The notes under the pieces: model-generated
What the model was told of the DNA's origin: nothing
Database searches by the model: none
The model's input: the letters and a program-made list of their open reading frames with translations, nothing else
Position numbers and translations under genes: made by a program
DNA from: Dimorphilus gyrociliatus
Lineage: Eukaryota; Animalia; Annelida
Direction: 5' to 3'
Assembly (NCBI GenBank): GCA_904063045.1
Contig: CAJFCJ010000014.1
Span: forward strand, 1,423,643-1,487,642
DNA length: 64,000 nucleotides
Shown here: positions 11,179-17,822 of the stretch, in pieces
Position numbering within the stretch: position 1 is the stretch's first letter
Layout of the letters: each line of letters begins with the position of its first letter

Positions 11179-12832
11179 TTTTTTTTCTCCTAAAACAATT
11201 TCATGGAGTCAAAGGGTTACGTAAAAAAAAGCGGACTACTATATATAAATCATAAAACTTACTTTTTAATTATTTCTTTACTATTAATAATTTGTATGCT
11301 ATTTTTTTTATTATTATTTAGTTTTCTTCATTCTCTTTTAAATTTGATGAACAATTTTATGATGTCATCAATTATTAACCGAATAAACATTTATATTAAT
11401 TTTTATAATTTGGTGCTATTTAGATTTCAATTACGAAATATCTTATTCCTAATTTATTATTTCAATATACAATTATTAATTGTTTACATATGTAATAAAT
11501 ATAGATGGTATAATTATTAAAAATTATAGAACGGAATAGTTTTACTTGTTACATAAAGATAAATAGAGAATGTTAAGGTTTAACTAGTTGAATTTTATCA
11601 AATTAATTCTTTATGAAGGATCGTTTAAATCTTCTCAACTTACCCTTTGAATTATAACTTACACGAATCGTCCATTAAAATCGTTTTATTTTCACTCGTA
11701 TCTACTTCTTTTAGATTTGATATTTTTTAATTATTTATAATTTATATACTTTGTTAAAATATCATGTTATTAAGGAGAAAATTCTTGGAGTGTGTTCTTT
11801 CAAAAAAAAAGAAACATTCTACGACAGAGAACGTTACTCATAGAATACTCCGGTTCCTTCATATCGAAAACCATACAGTTACTAAATACTAAATTATAGA
11901 TTATAGGGAATTAAAATTATATAATTCAGTTATGTATGACAATTAATTTCAATTAAGAAATCTAATATTACCTATATATTAATATATTGTTTCAAATTTT
12001 GCGGCAAACCGGAAATTGTTAAGGTCATTTTCGTATTCTGACTTTATCTTTATATGTACATATATAACTCAATTGTAACAGTAAATTTATATAGTTCATA
12101 TTCACATCGTTGAAATATACTTGAATTTTTCATATATGGCTATTCGCCATTTTAACATAGTATAGTTCCGGTTCAAGGTTAAGATACTTTATAAATATTT
12201 GTTTGATTCTTCTTTCGGAAAAGCATAAGTAATAGGTTTGCTGAAAACTAATAGTAAGAGAAATAGTAGAGCTTTTTAATAAAATATTGTCATTATTCTA
12301 ACTTTTTCTAACGATGAAAAAACAATCACTTATTAAAATTCTAGGTTTCCATGCTTTAGTACTATAACTGTAATATAATATTTAAACTTGAATAGAACGT
12401 AGACAGTCCTAAATGAACAGATCTTCAATCTTTTCGCAGGATCGCTTTATTTCATTTTAAAATATTAACAATTCCCCCTCAGCTAACTTAAACATTTTGC
12501 AAAAGCTTAGAACCCTATTGAAGGGGCTTAATTTAACAACTTTACAATTAGGAAGGCTTTAGTTTTAAAAATGCCCAAGGTCATTTATGAATTATTCTCT
12601 TAAAAGATAATATAAAAAAGACTTGTTATACTTTTTTGTTATTAATGAATGAGAGAGAAAATCTAATTTTTTTTTATCATTGTGTGCACCGAAGCTGAAA
12701 AGGTCTAATTTAGGTTTCAAGATCATCTTTATTCCTTTTACAAGATGCTTGATCAATTCTTATAAGAATATATCAGTCATGCAGTTTATTACTTGCTTTA
12801 CATTATTACGTTTATTTATTATATAGGAAAAA

Positions 12833-14797
12833 ATGGTTGAAGTTATGAATGGTGATGACTTCTTTGAAGGTACCGAAAAATTGTTGGAAGTTTGGTTTTC
12901 ATCTTCCAATCAAAACGATAAAGCAGATATAAGAGTAATATCCAGGTTAGAAACATTTCGTACAAGTTCAATTTGACAATAATTGATATATATATATATA
13001 TATATTAATTACAGGAATGAGTGGGACAACTTATTAGATTTGGTTCACTGCAAAATTATTAGTAAGAAATCAAACAGTGAAATGGATTCATACATATTAA
13101 GGTAATAATTTGTTTAATATTATACCTATAATGTTAAAAACAAAAGGGAAAAAACAAGTTTTTATCTGTAACCAATATTAAATCGATATATCATACTCTA
13201 CGTGTGACCACTATATTTCTATGATATAAAGAAAACTTGTTGTGCGATTTAGCATTTGTTATAAACCTTTCAAAGTGCTTTTTTCCCCCTTATTCATTAT
13301 TATTTTGCACTCGAAAGTTTAATTATGTAATAGGTACTAAAATTGACATATTTTAAAGAAACGCCGGTATTTATCTACATTTATTTGACGGTGATGACTA
13401 AAGCTGTATATAATTAAGTATAGTTGATTAATATAGTTCTATATTTTGTTTGTTATCCAGCGAAAGCAGCATGTTCATCTCCCGTAATCGTGTTATTTTA
13501 AAAACTTGCGGAACCACAACGTTGTTAAAAGCATTGAAACCTCTTTTGAAACTTATCAAAGATCAATGTTCCATGGATATTGTTCAAGTAATGACCATTT
13601 ATATTTGACATTTAAAGCATTGATTTGTGAGATCAAGTTTAATGAATAGAGACACGTTTTATATGTTAAATTATAAATGTAATATACTGTATATATATAT
13701 ATATATATATATATTCATACATACATTAAATAGACTTTTTTTCAACCAAAAGGTGAACATCTATATATGTTTCTTTAAAAATTCTATTGCTTTTTTACAG
13801 GATATTTTCTACTCGAGAAAAAACTTTGAAAGACCAGAATTGCAAGATAAGGTACATCAGAGTTTTGATGATGAAACGAGAATTTTAGATGAATTAGTCG
13901 AAGGTGATCAAATTTATGTCCTCTTACTTAGTGATTAAACGCAAAATGTTATCTAATCTGTAGATGGTGCAGCATACGCCTTAGGAAGGTTAAATAGGGA
14001 TTGCTGGTATCTTTATACAAAGGATATAGTTGGAGTAGTGGAGCCTGATCAAACAGTTGAAATATCCTTTAAATAGATCTATATATCATGTCTTATAGCA
14101 TATGAAAGATTACTTTCCTTAACTAGTGATCACCTATTAATGACAGAACTTGATCAAGATGTTATGCAAATATTCTTTTCGACCAGTGGCAAAACTGGAA
14201 AAGAAGCTACTATGGTAGAGAGAATTTATTCATAAATTTTTTTTAAAAAAATTCTTTTTATTCTAATAGAAATCTGGAATTGATCAAATAATACCAGGAG
14301 CCACAATTGACGAGTTCTTATTTGAACCCTGTGGTTATTCGATGAATGCAATTATGCCAGATGTATTATCACTTTATTATTTGATAATTTCTACTTTATC
14401 AATGTATCGTAGAACGAGTTATTTTTTTTTTTTGCAGTCGAAATACTTTACAATACATATAACGCCAGAAAAGAATTTCTCTTACGTTAGTTTTGAGAGC
14501 AATGTGCCCCAGAGATGCTATAAGGAATTATTATCAAAAGTTCTTGATCTTTTTAGACCTGTTCGATTTGTAATGACAGTGTTTGCTAATGAGGTAAACC
14601 TGAGCAGCTGCATTTAAAAAAATTAAATCTTTAATGTTGCTTATTAATATCATATTTTTGGATTTCAGGCGTCACTAGCTTCTCAAACCCTTAGTGAAAA
14701 TTGCAACTATGATAACTTCGAAGGATACAAGCGGTCCGACAAACAACTATGCCATTTTAAAAATTATTATTTGTTTTACGCTCATTTCAAGAAATGA
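12833..14797 (+). CDS. AMD1: S-adenosylmethionine decarboxylase proenzyme
   Basis: Exons 12833-12945, 13015-13101, 13461-13587, 13801-13903, 13964-14061, 14134-14214, 14270-14362, 14438-14593 and 14669-14797. Contains [13 protein letters not shown], the self-cleavage site [24 protein letters not shown] and TIHITPE...SYVSFESN. Confidence 0.97.
14062..14133 (+). other. U12-type (minor spliceosome) AT-AC intron, 72 nt
   Basis: 5' site ATATCCTTT, branch TTTCCTTAAC at 14114-14123, 3' end CAC. Removal restores PDQTVE|LLMTELD. Confidence 0.93.
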
Positions 14798-15874
14798 GAT
14801 GAGGCTGACAACTGCAGAATATGTAAATTTTGCAGTTGTCGAAGAAGAATCAATAATGATCAAAAACTTAGCTTCCTATTTTTCAGTTTTCTGCACTGTG
14901 CGGTTTCTATTTGCTTAAGCGTGGTATTAATAACATATTGTTGGGTCAGTTACAGAGAAAGACGTAAAAAGTGGTTTCTTTACATTATGGTCTGTATACG
15001 ACCCTCATGAGTTTTGGCTCTGAACATATATATAAATATCTATTACTCTTTTATTGAAAATAGTTTTCATTCAATGTAACCAAAAACTGACCTTTTCCCT
15101 AATAAATTCATACGCAAATTGAAACAATTCCTTTATGCCAACTTTTATCAATCTTAGTGCAAATGGAACAAATAAGCAAACTGTATTAAACTTCATACGA
15201 AAGAAGATATTGATACGAAACGCGTTTGATCCATGACAACGTTTATACAGACTCTTTCAAGTTAATGTTCATTAAAGAACACTGTTTCTTATAAAAGACA
15301 TTCAAGGAAATATTTTTGAATACAAAATTAGAAAAAGAGGAATGCTTTTCAAAAAATAAACCATTGGCGAATGTTAAGAAAAAATCACAACAAAAAAAAA
15401 AAGGAATGTTTTAGAGAGTAAGCTCATCACAACATAAATTATACCCATTCACATAACCATACCAACTAACCCAAATAAATACAATTATATAAGAAATCAA
15501 TACAACAGACACGCAAAATGACTAGTATAAAACATGGACAGTGACTAGAAACACAAAAGGCCATAAATTTCTTTGATCTAGTAAACTTGACTAGCCTTTA
15601 CCGAAGCTGTATAAAGAGTATTAGGTCATCTAAGACTTGAACGTAACAAGAGTTCTACATAGAAAAAAAATGATATAATTAAAACTAAACTAAGAAAAAA
15701 CAAATCAAACTTCTCTTTAATTATTTAGAGTACTTGGTGCTCTAGGAAATTTGATTATTTTTTTATCGGACTAATTATTAATTTCCCATTTAAATCCCAG
15801 TCAACAATTTTGCAAAACTAATTAGATACCCTAACACTCTTTATAAAGTTTCCGAGATAACAAAATATTTAAAA

Positions 15875-17822
15875 CTAGACATCAGGCTGTTGCATAACAT
15901 GCAATAGTGAAGACGCTGCTGGATGCGGTGGATTTGGGAAAGACGGAGATTGTAAAATAGGAGTAGGAATTCTAGTATTGGCCCCATTATTACTATTACC
16001 ACCATGAGCCAAATGGCGGAGTCTTGCCGGCAGCATATTATGAGAAAGTCGTTCGTGGCGTCTCAGGTGAGTTTTATGGTAAAACGACTTATCACATCCT
16101 TTTATTTCGCATTTGTGTGGCTTGCTCTTAGAAAGCGCTGAACGACGTACTTTTTTCCCAGGCATCCAGGTGTTGTGATCATCCTTGTCAATATGTAGGT
16201 CCTCTTTAGGCTACAGAAATAAGGAATATTATTATGAGTTATTTTAATTACATACAATCGAATATTCACGTAATGTACGTGACTAGATAATGGACAATTC
16301 GTAAATAAAAACATACATCGCCTGGTTGATGGATAACAAATTTCCCCTCAGAATCCTCGTCCATTGGTATATTTTGACTCCTTTCTTCCCAGACTCCAGC
16401 CTCGAATGTTTTACTTTCGCGCTCAATTTTTACAGGCTCGGCAGTATCTTCAAAAACAGTCTCTTCCTCGCTTTCCATGTTTTCAAATTTTGCCCTTCGC
16501 GCGTTGATATTCAGAGGCTTCCTTGACTTTCTACGATCGCCCCTTTCTTCTGTTGAGCTTGTGGAACAAGCAGTTGTTGCATGGTTGCTACCTTCACTAC
16601 AGTCACTATCGTCCATACCTTTAGCCTGCAACAATATCAATAGCACACGTTAAATCTATTAGCGTATAGAGATCTAATTATTAACATAAATCAGGTGAAA
16701 ATTGGTTGAATAAACGTTTACAAAGATGACATTCCATTGTTGGAGAATAAAATAAAAAAGAATTAAGCTACGCTATTTACGATTCCTTTCAGTAACAATT
16801 CATAAGATAATAGATGGTCAACTTCAAACATAGCTAATTGCATTTTATAAAAGACATTAGTTATTCCATTTCCGTATCGAACATAGACAAATGTAGACAG
16901 AATAAATCTAAATTCAATTTACTATAAACTAGCAAGGTGTCATGTACGACATTGAAAATGTCCTAGTTCACGTTATATATTAAAGGTTATATCACCTTTA
17001 CAATATACACTATTTAACAGCAGATAAGAGATTGATATGACACCTTTATAGTTTGATACGCAAATTTAGTTTTTTTAGGGCGAAAGTTAACAGAAACATC
17101 CTCCATGAGAAAAAGACACTGTATCCGCAAATATATTAAGAACGGTTAATCAGATTCAACTAAAGGGCTATTTTAGCTAACAATTAAGAAACTTGCATAG
17201 TGCATTTTTTCATTACAAGCTAAGCACGCAAATCTGACGTTGACATGAATGTAAAACTAGCTCTTAAAAACATGCATATAAAACAATATTTTCTAGCTAG
17301 GATAAAAGTTCCTTTACAATGATATAATGAAAATGAGATAAATACCTTTAATTTCTCAACAGCTGGTAGTACGACTTTTAGGAGATGATTCTCTTTTTTC
17401 TTTCTCTCTTCTTCGGAACCAATTCCATTTGTTGAGTGAACCTTTTGTGGGGTAGAAAATGTGCTTCCTTGATTTGGGTCTGAATCACCGGAGCTTCCTA
17501 AATCCTCTCTGCTACTGCGTCTCCTCTTTTTCTTTCCTTCACCACTCCGCCTCTTCCTCATTAATCTTTCTAAATCATCTGACATAATTTCTTCGCAAAC
17601 GTTTGCATCTTCGACATCAAAAGTTGTATCAGCCGAACATCCCGATTTAACTTTACGATTTATATGAACAAGTAGAACTTCTTTGTCATCGAGAGTTACA
17701 CCCACTACTCCCTGTACGCACATGTGACTTTGAAAATTCCATTCGAACGTGTTTCGACAAAGAAGCGTGACAGTGTCTGTTAAAAGAGTTCTCAATTTTT
17801 CTCTGTCTGGTTTCATATTCAT
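15875..17822 (-). CDS. C2H2 zinc-finger nuclear protein with an unnamed N-terminal globular domain
   Basis: Exons 17822-17346, 16625-16317 and 16210-15875, all phase 0. Single C2H2 finger KCEIKGCDKSFYHKTHLRRHERLSH and NLS-like RKRRSGEGKKKRRR. Confidence 0.75.

Follow-up and report, generated by a model that had tools for sequence, protein, structure and literature searches.

The stretch of DNA considered here (the window) comprises 64,000 nucleotides (nt) of the annelid Dimorphilus gyrociliatus (GenBank assembly GCA_904063045.1, contig CAJFCJ010000014.1, positions 1,423,643 to 1,487,642 of the forward strand) and carries AMD1, which encodes the proenzyme of S-adenosylmethionine decarboxylase (AdoMetDC). 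AMD1 is the textbook gene whose 3' 'untranslated region' (UTR) is translated by readthrough, with ribosomes being stalled. Descriptions of its tail have so far treated it as a feature of vertebrates, and its purpose is disputed between ribosome counting and queueing on the one hand and a degradation signal (degron) on the other. In the window the reading frame behind the AMD1 stop codon stays open for 70 further codons, and this tail, judged from its conservation, is very probably a selected, translated extension of AdoMetDC.

The AMD1 locus and its in-frame tail

The features on which the analysis is based, including the open reading frame (ORF) of the tail and its transmembrane (TM)-like segment, are as follows:

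12833-14797, plus strand: AMD1 of D. gyrociliatus (S-adenosylmethionine decarboxylase proenzyme), nine coding exons
14669-14797, plus strand: last coding exon of AMD1, ending ...YAHFKK and then UGA
14795-14797, plus strand: first stop codon UGA, candidate readthrough site (context AAG-AAA-UGA-GAU)
14798-15007, plus strand: in-frame tail ORF of 70 codons (candidate readthrough extension), closed by UGA at 15008-15010
14798-14805, plus strand: spacer of 8 nt (GAUGAGGC) between stop and hairpin
14806-14841, plus strand: predicted hairpin of 15 base pairs (bp), arms 14806-14820 and 14827-14841, loop 14821-14826
14813-14839, plus strand: Cys cluster C-x2-C-x2-C-x-C, tail residues 6-14, overlapping the hairpin
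14867-14941, plus strand: hydrophobic, TM-like segment, tail residues 24-48
14942-14974, plus strand: conserved motif W-V-S-Y-R-E-R-R-K-K-W, tail residues 49-59
14999-15010, plus strand: tail end Arg68-Pro69-Ser70-UGA (CGA CCC UCA UGA)
15101-15106, plus strand: first AATAAA past both stops, likely poly(A) signal, 91 nt beyond the tail stop

The exon peptides of AMD1 could be located in the window, and the resulting gene model matches the assembled transcript of a close relative (locus L001, see below) end to end. The locus of the deposited gene DgyrCDS9985 on the same contig is 100% identical to the window over 7,965 nt. In the deposited protein (306 amino acids, aa) exon 5 (window 13963-14064) is wrongly spliced and 26 conserved residues are missing; these residues are encoded by the window and confirmed by the L001 transcript, giving a correct AMD1 protein of ~328 residues. 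A preliminary description of the stretch had taken the TGA at 14795-14797 as the AMD1 stop, and rightly so, since AMD1 proteins from other animals have C-termini that align with the terminal YAHFKK, and so does the deposited D. gyrociliatus protein.

The same description had noted an in-frame run of 70 codons from this stop to the TGA at 15008-15010, containing a Cys cluster and a hydrophobic stretch some 25 residues long, then a basic patch and Pro-Ser at the very end, and had estimated the chance of such a run as below 1%. The sequence reads exactly so, all of these elements are present and, with stop triplets at 6.8-6.9% of the positions in the whole window and locally alike, the probability of 70 open codons amounts to ~0.007. 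The other two frames behind the AMD1 stop close after 39 and 0 codons. The G+C content is 35.7% in the tail, 34.9% in the last coding exon and 27.9% in the following 860 nt. Between the first stop and 15101 neither AATAAA nor ATTAAA was found on the plus strand and consequently the tail should be part of the mRNA, whose 3' ends were inferred from poly(A) signals and one assembled transcript (L001).

Independent initiation of the tail was rejected, since no in-frame AUG is common to both dinophilids (the window has only Met64, L001 only Met23). Likewise rejected were a +1-frame ORF from an AUG just past the stop, with 39 codons in the window, 34 in L001 and a ratio of non-synonymous to synonymous differences per site (pN/pS) of 0.88, and an overlapping minus-strand gene, the sole minus ORF of at least 30 aa over the tail being one of 38 aa at its 5' edge (14747-14863). 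A Pfam scan of five tails yielded nothing above threshold, the tail of the window giving only weak matches to TM segments. Furthermore, a profile of the spiralian tails (alignment A2, see below) was run against a collection of 5.8 billion proteins and gave 46 word candidates, none of them at E ≤ 10, so that the tails are absent from that collection as separately called proteins. The tail-type extensions found here carry no annotation and represent an annotation gap.

Conservation of the tail

An exhaustive HMMER search seeded with the 52-residue AMD1 exon and followed by two word-indexed searches retrieved one close relative besides the window's own protein, namely P0153 of the Logan transcript assembly SRR31837527 (locus L001), whose enzyme is 84% identical; a repeat search for more dinophilid AMD1 sequences returned only P0153 and P0154. 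In L001 the same UGA in the same context is followed by a 70-codon in-frame tail ending in UGA, which aligns with no indels and with 46 of the 70 residues identical, and alignability ends at the second stop codon. The L001 contig has an AATAAA at position 1215, which is 15 nt past the stop of the tail (1198-1200), and terminates 16 nt further on. The test of non-synonymous against synonymous divergence (dN/dS, omega) compares this single species pair, whose synonymous sites are saturated in the tail (dS 1.09) as well as in the coding sequence (CDS, dS 1.06); omega amounts to 0.21 for the tail and 0.08 for the CDS. For tail codons 17-70 a pS of 0.69 versus a pN of 0.24 was obtained in frame 0 (Fisher p = 5.7e-7), the same comparison giving pN/pS of 0.88 and 0.97 in frames +1 and +2. 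These values point to purifying selection on the tail peptide in this frame only, and the conserved ORF together with the frame-specific substitution pattern argues that the tail is a translated sequence under peptide-level purifying selection.

An open frame without function, arisen by chance in an AT-rich 3' UTR, has to be weighed here, as a run of this kind is expected at ~0.7% of positions and a scan over many genes will meet some. Against this stands that length, stop position and peptide are all kept in a species with saturated synonymous sites, that the G+C content of the tail is coding-like and that homologous tails occur in three phyla (see below). In a neutral simulation the tail ORF stayed open in 0.5-0.9% of the trials. 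We attach practically no weight to this explanation, and from the sequence comparison a chance origin of the tail is excluded.

AMD1 loci of other animals were translated past the stop codon. Such a comparison had been proposed in the preliminary description for annelids, molluscs and vertebrates, and in-frame tails were indeed found in Helobdella, Capitella, Owenia, Mya and the skate. The stop codons and the open frames behind them are:

Tubulanus polymorphus (nemertean): UGA, then 117 codons
Owenia fusiformis: UGA, then 71 codons
Helobdella robusta: UGA, then 424 codons
Mya arenaria: UAG, then 143 codons
Capitella teleta: UGA, then 7 codons, a second UGA and 58 codons
insect-like Logan contig L010: UGA, then 252 codons
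Limulus: UGA, then 40 codons
Leucoraja (skate, known vertebrate tail): UGA, then 125 codons
Nematostella: UAG, then 2 codons only

Smith-Waterman comparison with shuffled sequences related the Dimorphilus tail to those of Tubulanus (p = 0.001, z = 4.4), Mya (p = 0.001, z = 5.1) and Owenia (p = 0.01), and the tails of Tubulanus and Mya to each other (z = 6.8). For the final 100 aa of the Helobdella tail, matches were obtained with each of the five others (p < 0.0005 to 0.0075). For Capitella the link is weaker and runs mainly via Owenia (p = 0.0025) and L001 (p = 0.04). The alignments (A2, A4) unveiled a shared module, which consists of CxxC, a hydrophobic run and then [VI]-[FYC]-x-W-x-[ST]-x-[RKQ]-x-[RK]-[RQ]-K; thereby W49 and K57 are invariant in A2, K57 is invariant in A4 too, and the CxxC lies at a comparable distance from the conserved Trp in Tubulanus, Owenia, Mya and Capitella. 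From the conserved Trp, which six tails keep, to the tail stop 21 residues are counted in the window, L001, Owenia and Mya, 22 in Helobdella and 31 in Tubulanus, and the residues between the Trp module and the stop are poorly conserved. The first AMD1 stop is kept in 7/7 spiralian species examined. Judged from these alignments, the tail is the minimal form of a module which five annelids, one nemertean and one bivalve carry past the AMD1 stop. In Dimorphilus, whose genome is very compact, the tail is essentially the core module alone. As far as selection is concerned, the preliminary description's view of the tail as a real in-frame extension is thus borne out by the conserved ORF, the frame-specific purifying selection and the homologues in three phyla.

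Two of the annelid tails are unusual. In Helobdella (L008:20767-22044), whose genome is AT-rich, the frame is open for 424 codons; Pfam gave no match to it, and resemblance to the other tails is confined to its final ~30 residues. In Capitella (L005:6097-6300) two in-frame UGA codons at a distance of seven codons precede the homologous tail, an arrangement which could be due to double readthrough, a polymorphism of the strain, an error in the assembly or incipient decay.

A UGA in front of a Cys-rich tail might also be taken for a selenocysteine codon, the tail then being part of the normal protein, and in addition an arthropod homologue has Cys at the stop position and a SEPSECS gene had been reported in the window by the preliminary description. 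There, selenocysteine recoding had been ranked as less likely, with which our results agree. No selenocysteine insertion sequence (SECIS) or other credible Rfam family was found at E ≤ 10 in window 12000-16500 or in L001, and the 36 nt which follow the tail stop in L001 are too short for a SECIS. Furthermore, the homologous clam (Mya) tail follows UAG, Capitella has two stops and the AMD1 proteins of many animals end at this position, so that selenocysteine is scarcely credible.

Of more weight is the possibility that selection acts on protein localization instead of translation, the readthrough product being a functional isoform of AdoMetDC which is anchored in the membrane by a C-terminal TM helix with juxtamembrane Cys and a basic flank. 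The best 19-residue Kyte-Doolittle window reaches 2.44 in the window (residues 27-45, with 25 residues after it) and 2.46 in L001, a Cys cluster precedes the segment and RERRKK follows it in accordance with an anchor, and the weak, sub-threshold Pfam matches are confined to TM segments. In addition, purifying selection spans the whole tail and not merely its end, and in the arthropod sequence P0121 the first stop is replaced by a Cys codon, the tail being constitutive in that lineage. Elsewhere, however, the best Kyte-Doolittle scores are 0.5-1.8 (Tubulanus 0.98, Owenia 0.75, Helobdella C-terminus 0.51; clam borderline). A single TM-grade segment within ~30 residues of the C-terminus is thus present in the tail of the window but not conserved in other phyla, and the 'hydrophobic tail' of the preliminary description holds for the dinophilids (TM grade, 2.4), marginally for the clam, and not for Tubulanus, Owenia or the leech C-terminus, so that hydrophobicity does not form the conserved core of the tails. 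Conservation concerns the W/basic motif together with its fixed spacing from the stop, which no anchor needs, and the stop codon itself is kept in all seven spiralian species. We consider an anchor unlikely, albeit far less so than selenocysteine.

Predicted hairpin and proposed mechanism

The fold behind the stop codon was examined only where the readthrough model predicts structure and, consequently, no discount for multiple testing was made. After the 8-nt spacer the hairpin of the window is predicted at -20.4 kcal/mol (z = -6.75; 0/200 shuffles fold as well) and that of L001, with 14 bp, at -19.7 kcal/mol (z = -6.5). Window and L001 differ in the hairpin at two positions, one changing the basal U.G to U-A with pairing kept and the other opening the apical pair. 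Tail codons 1-16 carry three non-synonymous and 0 synonymous changes (P ~0.002 given the background; pS elsewhere is given as 0.57), and this lack of synonymous changes indicates a constraint on the RNA itself. A spacer of 8 nt and a stem of 10-15 bp represent the established layout of readthrough stimulators, as known for murine leukemia virus (MuLV), alphaviruses, tobraviruses and Drosophila kelch (14 bp, 8 nt) (PMC3159437). According to the predicted fold the hairpin is apparently placed like such a classic stimulator, and the readthrough device which the preliminary description had suspected past the AMD1 stop gains a conserved predicted hairpin at the canonical 8-nt distance.

The stop context is a UGA with A-rich upstream codons and a following G, and UGA-then-G is common to the window, Tubulanus, Owenia, Helobdella and the insect locus. 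Local hairpins of 7-9 bp follow the AMD1 stop in Tubulanus and the insect locus. Tubulanus (L003:6862-6873) and Mya (L009:13848-13859) were found to share stop-GGG-UAC-G directly after the AMD1 stop (UGA and UAG, respectively); according to Firth et al. 2011 (PMC3159437), readthrough in rice stripe necrosis benyvirus occurs in the context UAG-GGG-UAC.

The conserved nucleotides behind the stop could alternatively be a splicing or editing signal, in which case the tail would be translated without ribosomal readthrough because alternative splicing or A-to-I editing (UGA to UGG) removes the stop. The conserved stretch in fact contains CUGAC, which is branch-point-like, and two acceptor-like ...UGCAG; a strong duplex lies nearby, as editing requires double-stranded RNA; and Firth et al. 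pointed out that splicing or editing may underlie some of the readthrough candidates (PMC3159437). The assembled L001 transcript, however, is colinear and retains the UGA. Both acceptor-like AGs join the tail frame only from a phase-2 donor, whereas the exon-8 donor is of phase 0 and would lead to a stop after six codons. Moreover, peptide conservation begins at the first codon past the stop, the UGA itself is unpaired in the stable fold and the hairpin lies at the distance at which it can act on a ribosome. Splicing or editing is hence quite improbable, and ribosomal readthrough is the probable route to the tail.

In the mechanism which we propose, the hairpin would stall or strain the ribosome at the UGA and raise near-cognate decoding, an effect also exerted by the structures at 8-nt spacing in MuLV, alphaviruses and Drosophila kelch, and a small fraction of the ribosomes would go on to translate the tail. 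The latter would then restrain AMD1 output in cis, in the manner of vertebrate AMD1's C-tail. Once the ribosome is at the second UGA, the W/basic motif would be situated 10-22 residues from the peptidyl-transferase center and thereby within the exit tunnel. Known arrest peptides act in this range. The final Arg-Pro-Ser/Thr would be located at the catalytic center, at the positions of vertebrate Arg125-Pro126-His127, and termination would be slow or blocked; the strongest hint of slow termination is the fixed motif-to-stop distance across phyla, for which an anchor has no need. Once the extended enzyme is released, its strongly hydrophobic C-terminal segment would mark the product for triage or degradation. 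By analogy, it is plausible that the pause responds to polyamines through the Pro-Ser/Thr-stop. For the human tail, cryo-electron microscopy revealed that Arg125, the third-last residue, inserts into the peptidyl-transferase center and blocks eRF1, while a clamp of Phe124, Arg121 and Lys117 grips the tunnel (PMC13025110), and the hydrophobicity of the vertebrate AMD1 tail leads to BAG6-dependent degradation (bioRxiv 10.1101/2022.07.20.500724).

Several observations weigh against this interpretation. The hairpin is known from only two dinophilid sequences, which are nearly identical there, without a true compensatory change between them; the hairpin might be conserved for a different role at the RNA level; and in nine other species no significant fold was found in the 80 nt behind the stop (z -1.0 to +1.0). 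The base after the UGA is G and not the C or CUAG of the leakiest contexts. The second in-frame stop inside the Capitella tail could mean that the system decays there, and a TM-grade segment followed by a basic cluster has the look of a genuine membrane anchor. The tail furthermore shows no detectable similarity to its vertebrate counterpart (Smith-Waterman versus skate p = 0.43; hhalign probability with the spiralian profile 0.07%), and the clamp of Phe, Arg and Lys is missing in both dinophilids, the window having F, M and I at the 11th-, 7th- and 4th-last positions, where the vertebrate tail has Lys117, Arg121 and Phe124. Finally, work on the vertebrate tail itself disputes queueing and favors a degron role (bioRxiv 10.1101/2022.07.20.500724). 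With respect to these points, arrest of ribosomes by the tail is conceivable but rather doubtful. For the statement as a whole, that is, a selectively maintained C-terminal extension of AdoMetDC made by the minority of ribosomes which read through the UGA at 14795-14797, we nevertheless lean, with some reserve, toward acceptance.

Tail ending, polyamines and comparison with known systems

Among the annelids the tails end in IRPS* (window), IRPT* (L001), REPS* (Helobdella), LKPS* (Capitella) and NCS* (Owenia), where the asterisk denotes the stop; those outside the annelids end in IRM* (Tubulanus), KCR* (Mya) and FRPH* (skate). The Pro-Ser-stop end pointed out in the preliminary description therefore stands for the window, Helobdella and Capitella, but not for the sister species (Pro-Thr-stop), Owenia, the nemertean or the clam. 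A basic-(x)-Pro-Ser/Thr-stop is present in 4/5 annelid tails, and from this comparison P-[ST]-stop appears to be an ending conserved at the level of annelids and not a universal feature of the tails. The Arg-Pro codons read CGA-CCC in the window (14999-15004) and CGA-CCG in the relative (L001:1189-1194). In yeast CGA-CCG ranks with the most inhibitory codon pairs, and by analogy a contribution of the Arg-Pro codon pair at the RNA level to slow decoding at the tail end is possible.

The terminal Pro-Ser-stop was originally proposed as a termination sensor downstream of the CDS, sensitive to polyamines and eIF5A in the manner of yeast HOL1: high polyamines would hold ribosomes at 15005-15010 and thereby feed back on AdoMetDC synthesis. 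This proposal refines the mechanism given above and does not exclude it. As precedents HOL1 and AZIN1 had been named. For the upstream ORF (uORF) of HOL1 the Pro-Ser-stop is confirmed in a secondary source (PMC10855120), which cites high polyamines as inhibiting eIF5A-dependent termination there; for the AZIN1 uORF the same source gives PPW as sensor motif, so that this example is inexact. In line with a sensor, Pro-Ser-stop occurs in the window, Helobdella and Capitella and as the close variant Pro-Thr-stop in the sister dinophilid, P-[ST] persisting though the flanking residues vary, and vertebrate AMD1 is under translational polyamine control via its MAGDIS uORF (PMC13025110). In addition, 74 full-length (>300 aa) AMD1 hits have a main ORF which ends in Pro-Ser-stop; they are evidently of arthropod origin, all those inspected showing the arthropod-type K[FY]PS, and the motif thus recurs at AMD1 termination. 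Conversely, the motif is not kept outside the annelids or in the annelid Owenia, Thr replaces Ser in the closest relative and polyamine dependence of the vertebrate tail stall is itself unestablished. As a reading of the Pro-Ser-stop a HOL1-like sensor is about as unlikely as the anchor, and that an arrest by the tail senses polyamines is, by analogy, if anything slightly less likely still.

Upstream of the AMD1 start two short AUG-initiated ORFs are located closely (window 12745-12765 and 12779-12826). One of them encodes the hexapeptide MLDQFL-stop, 67 nt before the AMD1 start, and would be a candidate uORF if contained in the mRNA. Vertebrate AMD1 is controlled by a hexapeptide uORF. On the other side, the downstream neighbor gene is convergent: its last exon lies at window 15875-16165 on the minus strand and encodes a C2H2 zinc-finger-like peptide (...HKCEIKGCDKSFYHKTHLRRHERLSH...), with the stop codons of the two genes ~865 nt apart.

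In arthropods the AMD1 main ORF ends almost invariably in K-[FY]-P-S and then UGA (P0008, P0045, P0244 and others; locus L010:3268-3294), which places the arthropod Pro-Ser-stop at the primary, read-through termination site. Mollusc AMD1 proteins commonly end in R-P-V-I. Insect-like tails behind the UGA (L010:3292-4053, 252 codons) end with a conserved hydrophobic run, F-S-W-W-R-N-K-I-S and UGA, and the 40-codon tail of Limulus (L012:19285-19410) ends in LLWERVS*. Several of the database proteins which include a tail (among P0013, P0030, P0035, P0083, P0121 and P0138) originate from a gene caller reading UGA as Trp. The Ile-Ser-stop of the arthropod tails recalls the vertebrate MAGDIS uORF.

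Full-text searches of the literature revealed nothing on AMD1/SamDC readthrough in annelids, molluscs, nemerteans or invertebrates generally, the 2018 Nature paper on the vertebrate tail (see below) lying outside that scope. An entry of a supplementary table does bear on it: Anopheles gambiae AGAP009619, the SamDC orthologue, is a PhyloCSF readthrough candidate of 268 codons with UGA-G (Jungreis et al. 2016, PMC5100048, supplementary file 3). It appears there as a table-only entry in the clade-specific class, D. melanogaster SamDC being scored as non-readthrough (PMC5100048).

A sequence-unrelated but architecturally parallel tail exists on the same enzyme in annelids, a nemertean and a mollusc, and the arthropod tails represent a third set. 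This suggests that selection keeps rebuilding or retaining the arrangement on AdoMetDC specifically, and recurrent tails on this enzyme argue for a real regulatory role tied to polyamine metabolism. Going further, the AMD1 readthrough tails of spiralians, arthropods and vertebrates might constitute an ancient, bilaterian-wide nascent-peptide arrest or slow-termination sensor, by descent or repeated convergence, which the annelid [RK]-(x)-P-[ST]-stop would couple to polyamines and eIF5A; this generalization is speculative and we regard it as unlikely. If true, no programmed readthrough known in animals would be more deeply conserved than that of AMD1, and, owing to the strong hairpin and a tail reduced to 70 codons, D. 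gyrociliatus would be the simplest system for dissection. The Dimorphilus version is compact, comprising an 8-nt spacer, a 36-nt hairpin and a 70-codon tail, and offers clear mutational targets in the hairpin arms, W49, the RRKK cluster, R68 and P69, which makes both the cause of readthrough and the role of the tail directly testable.

The closest known system is the vertebrate AMD1 C-tail, reportedly the subject of Yordanova et al. 2018, Nature 553:356 (as cited in PMC13025110 and PMC8831848). In both cases it is the same gene in which UGA is followed by a conserved in-frame ORF filling most of the proximal 3' UTR, with a peptide under selection and with hydrophobic stretches. Arg-Pro occupies the third- and second-last positions in the skate (FRPH*), the window (IRPS*) and L001 (IRPT*). 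Within the spiralian tails Arg is found at the third-last position in the window and L001, is shifted in Helobdella (R-E-P-S) and replaced by Lys in Capitella (K-P-S), and is not found in Tubulanus, Mya or Owenia. By analogy, the vertebrate tail seems a closer precedent than HOL1 for the dinophilid Arg-Pro-Ser/Thr-stop. The differences are considerable: the tail has 70 codons in the window and 125-127 in vertebrates, the spiralian tails have as conserved core a W/basic motif 10-22 residues from the end, and the strong 3' hairpin at 8 nt in the window contrasts with an only modest, non-significant fold in the skate. Stalling has been demonstrated for the vertebrate tail, whereas that of the window is known from its sequence alone. 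Altogether, gene and logic appear to be those of the known vertebrate tail, while the tail family seems, from the alignments, to be a different, previously unannotated one with its own predicted stimulatory hairpin.

With the HOL1 uORF (Vindu et al. 2021, as cited in PMC10855120) the window shares a terminal Pro-Ser-stop in an mRNA of polyamine metabolism. There, the motif ends a 6-codon uORF upstream of the CDS, whereas in the window it ends a 70-codon extension downstream; moreover, the sister species of the window has Thr in place of Ser, and the motif of the window is a sequence observation. AGAP009619, according to the table entry cited above, and the AMD1 of the window are orthologues with UGA-G, and the Anopheles gene has a long conserved second ORF (268 codons; 252 in L010). 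The arthropod tails end in ...WWRNKIS-UGA and do not resemble the spiralian module significantly (hhalign E = 0.038, probability 1.3%). Common ancestry of the spiralian, arthropod and vertebrate tails was therefore considered and found not to be demonstrable, the arthropod probability being 1.3% and the skate giving no match.

Finally, the readthrough elements compiled by Firth et al. 2011 (PMC3159437) share with the window the UGA stop, the 8-nt spacer, the stem of 14-15 bp and the suppressed synonymous variation over the stem. In many of these elements the loop spans 50-270 nt, whereas the loop in the window has only 6-8 nt and the structure is a simple local hairpin. Compared with the MuLV, alphavirus, tobravirus, kelch and headcase sites, the element of the window has no compensatory pair and is known from its predicted fold; in spacing and stem length it nevertheless follows the same layout.

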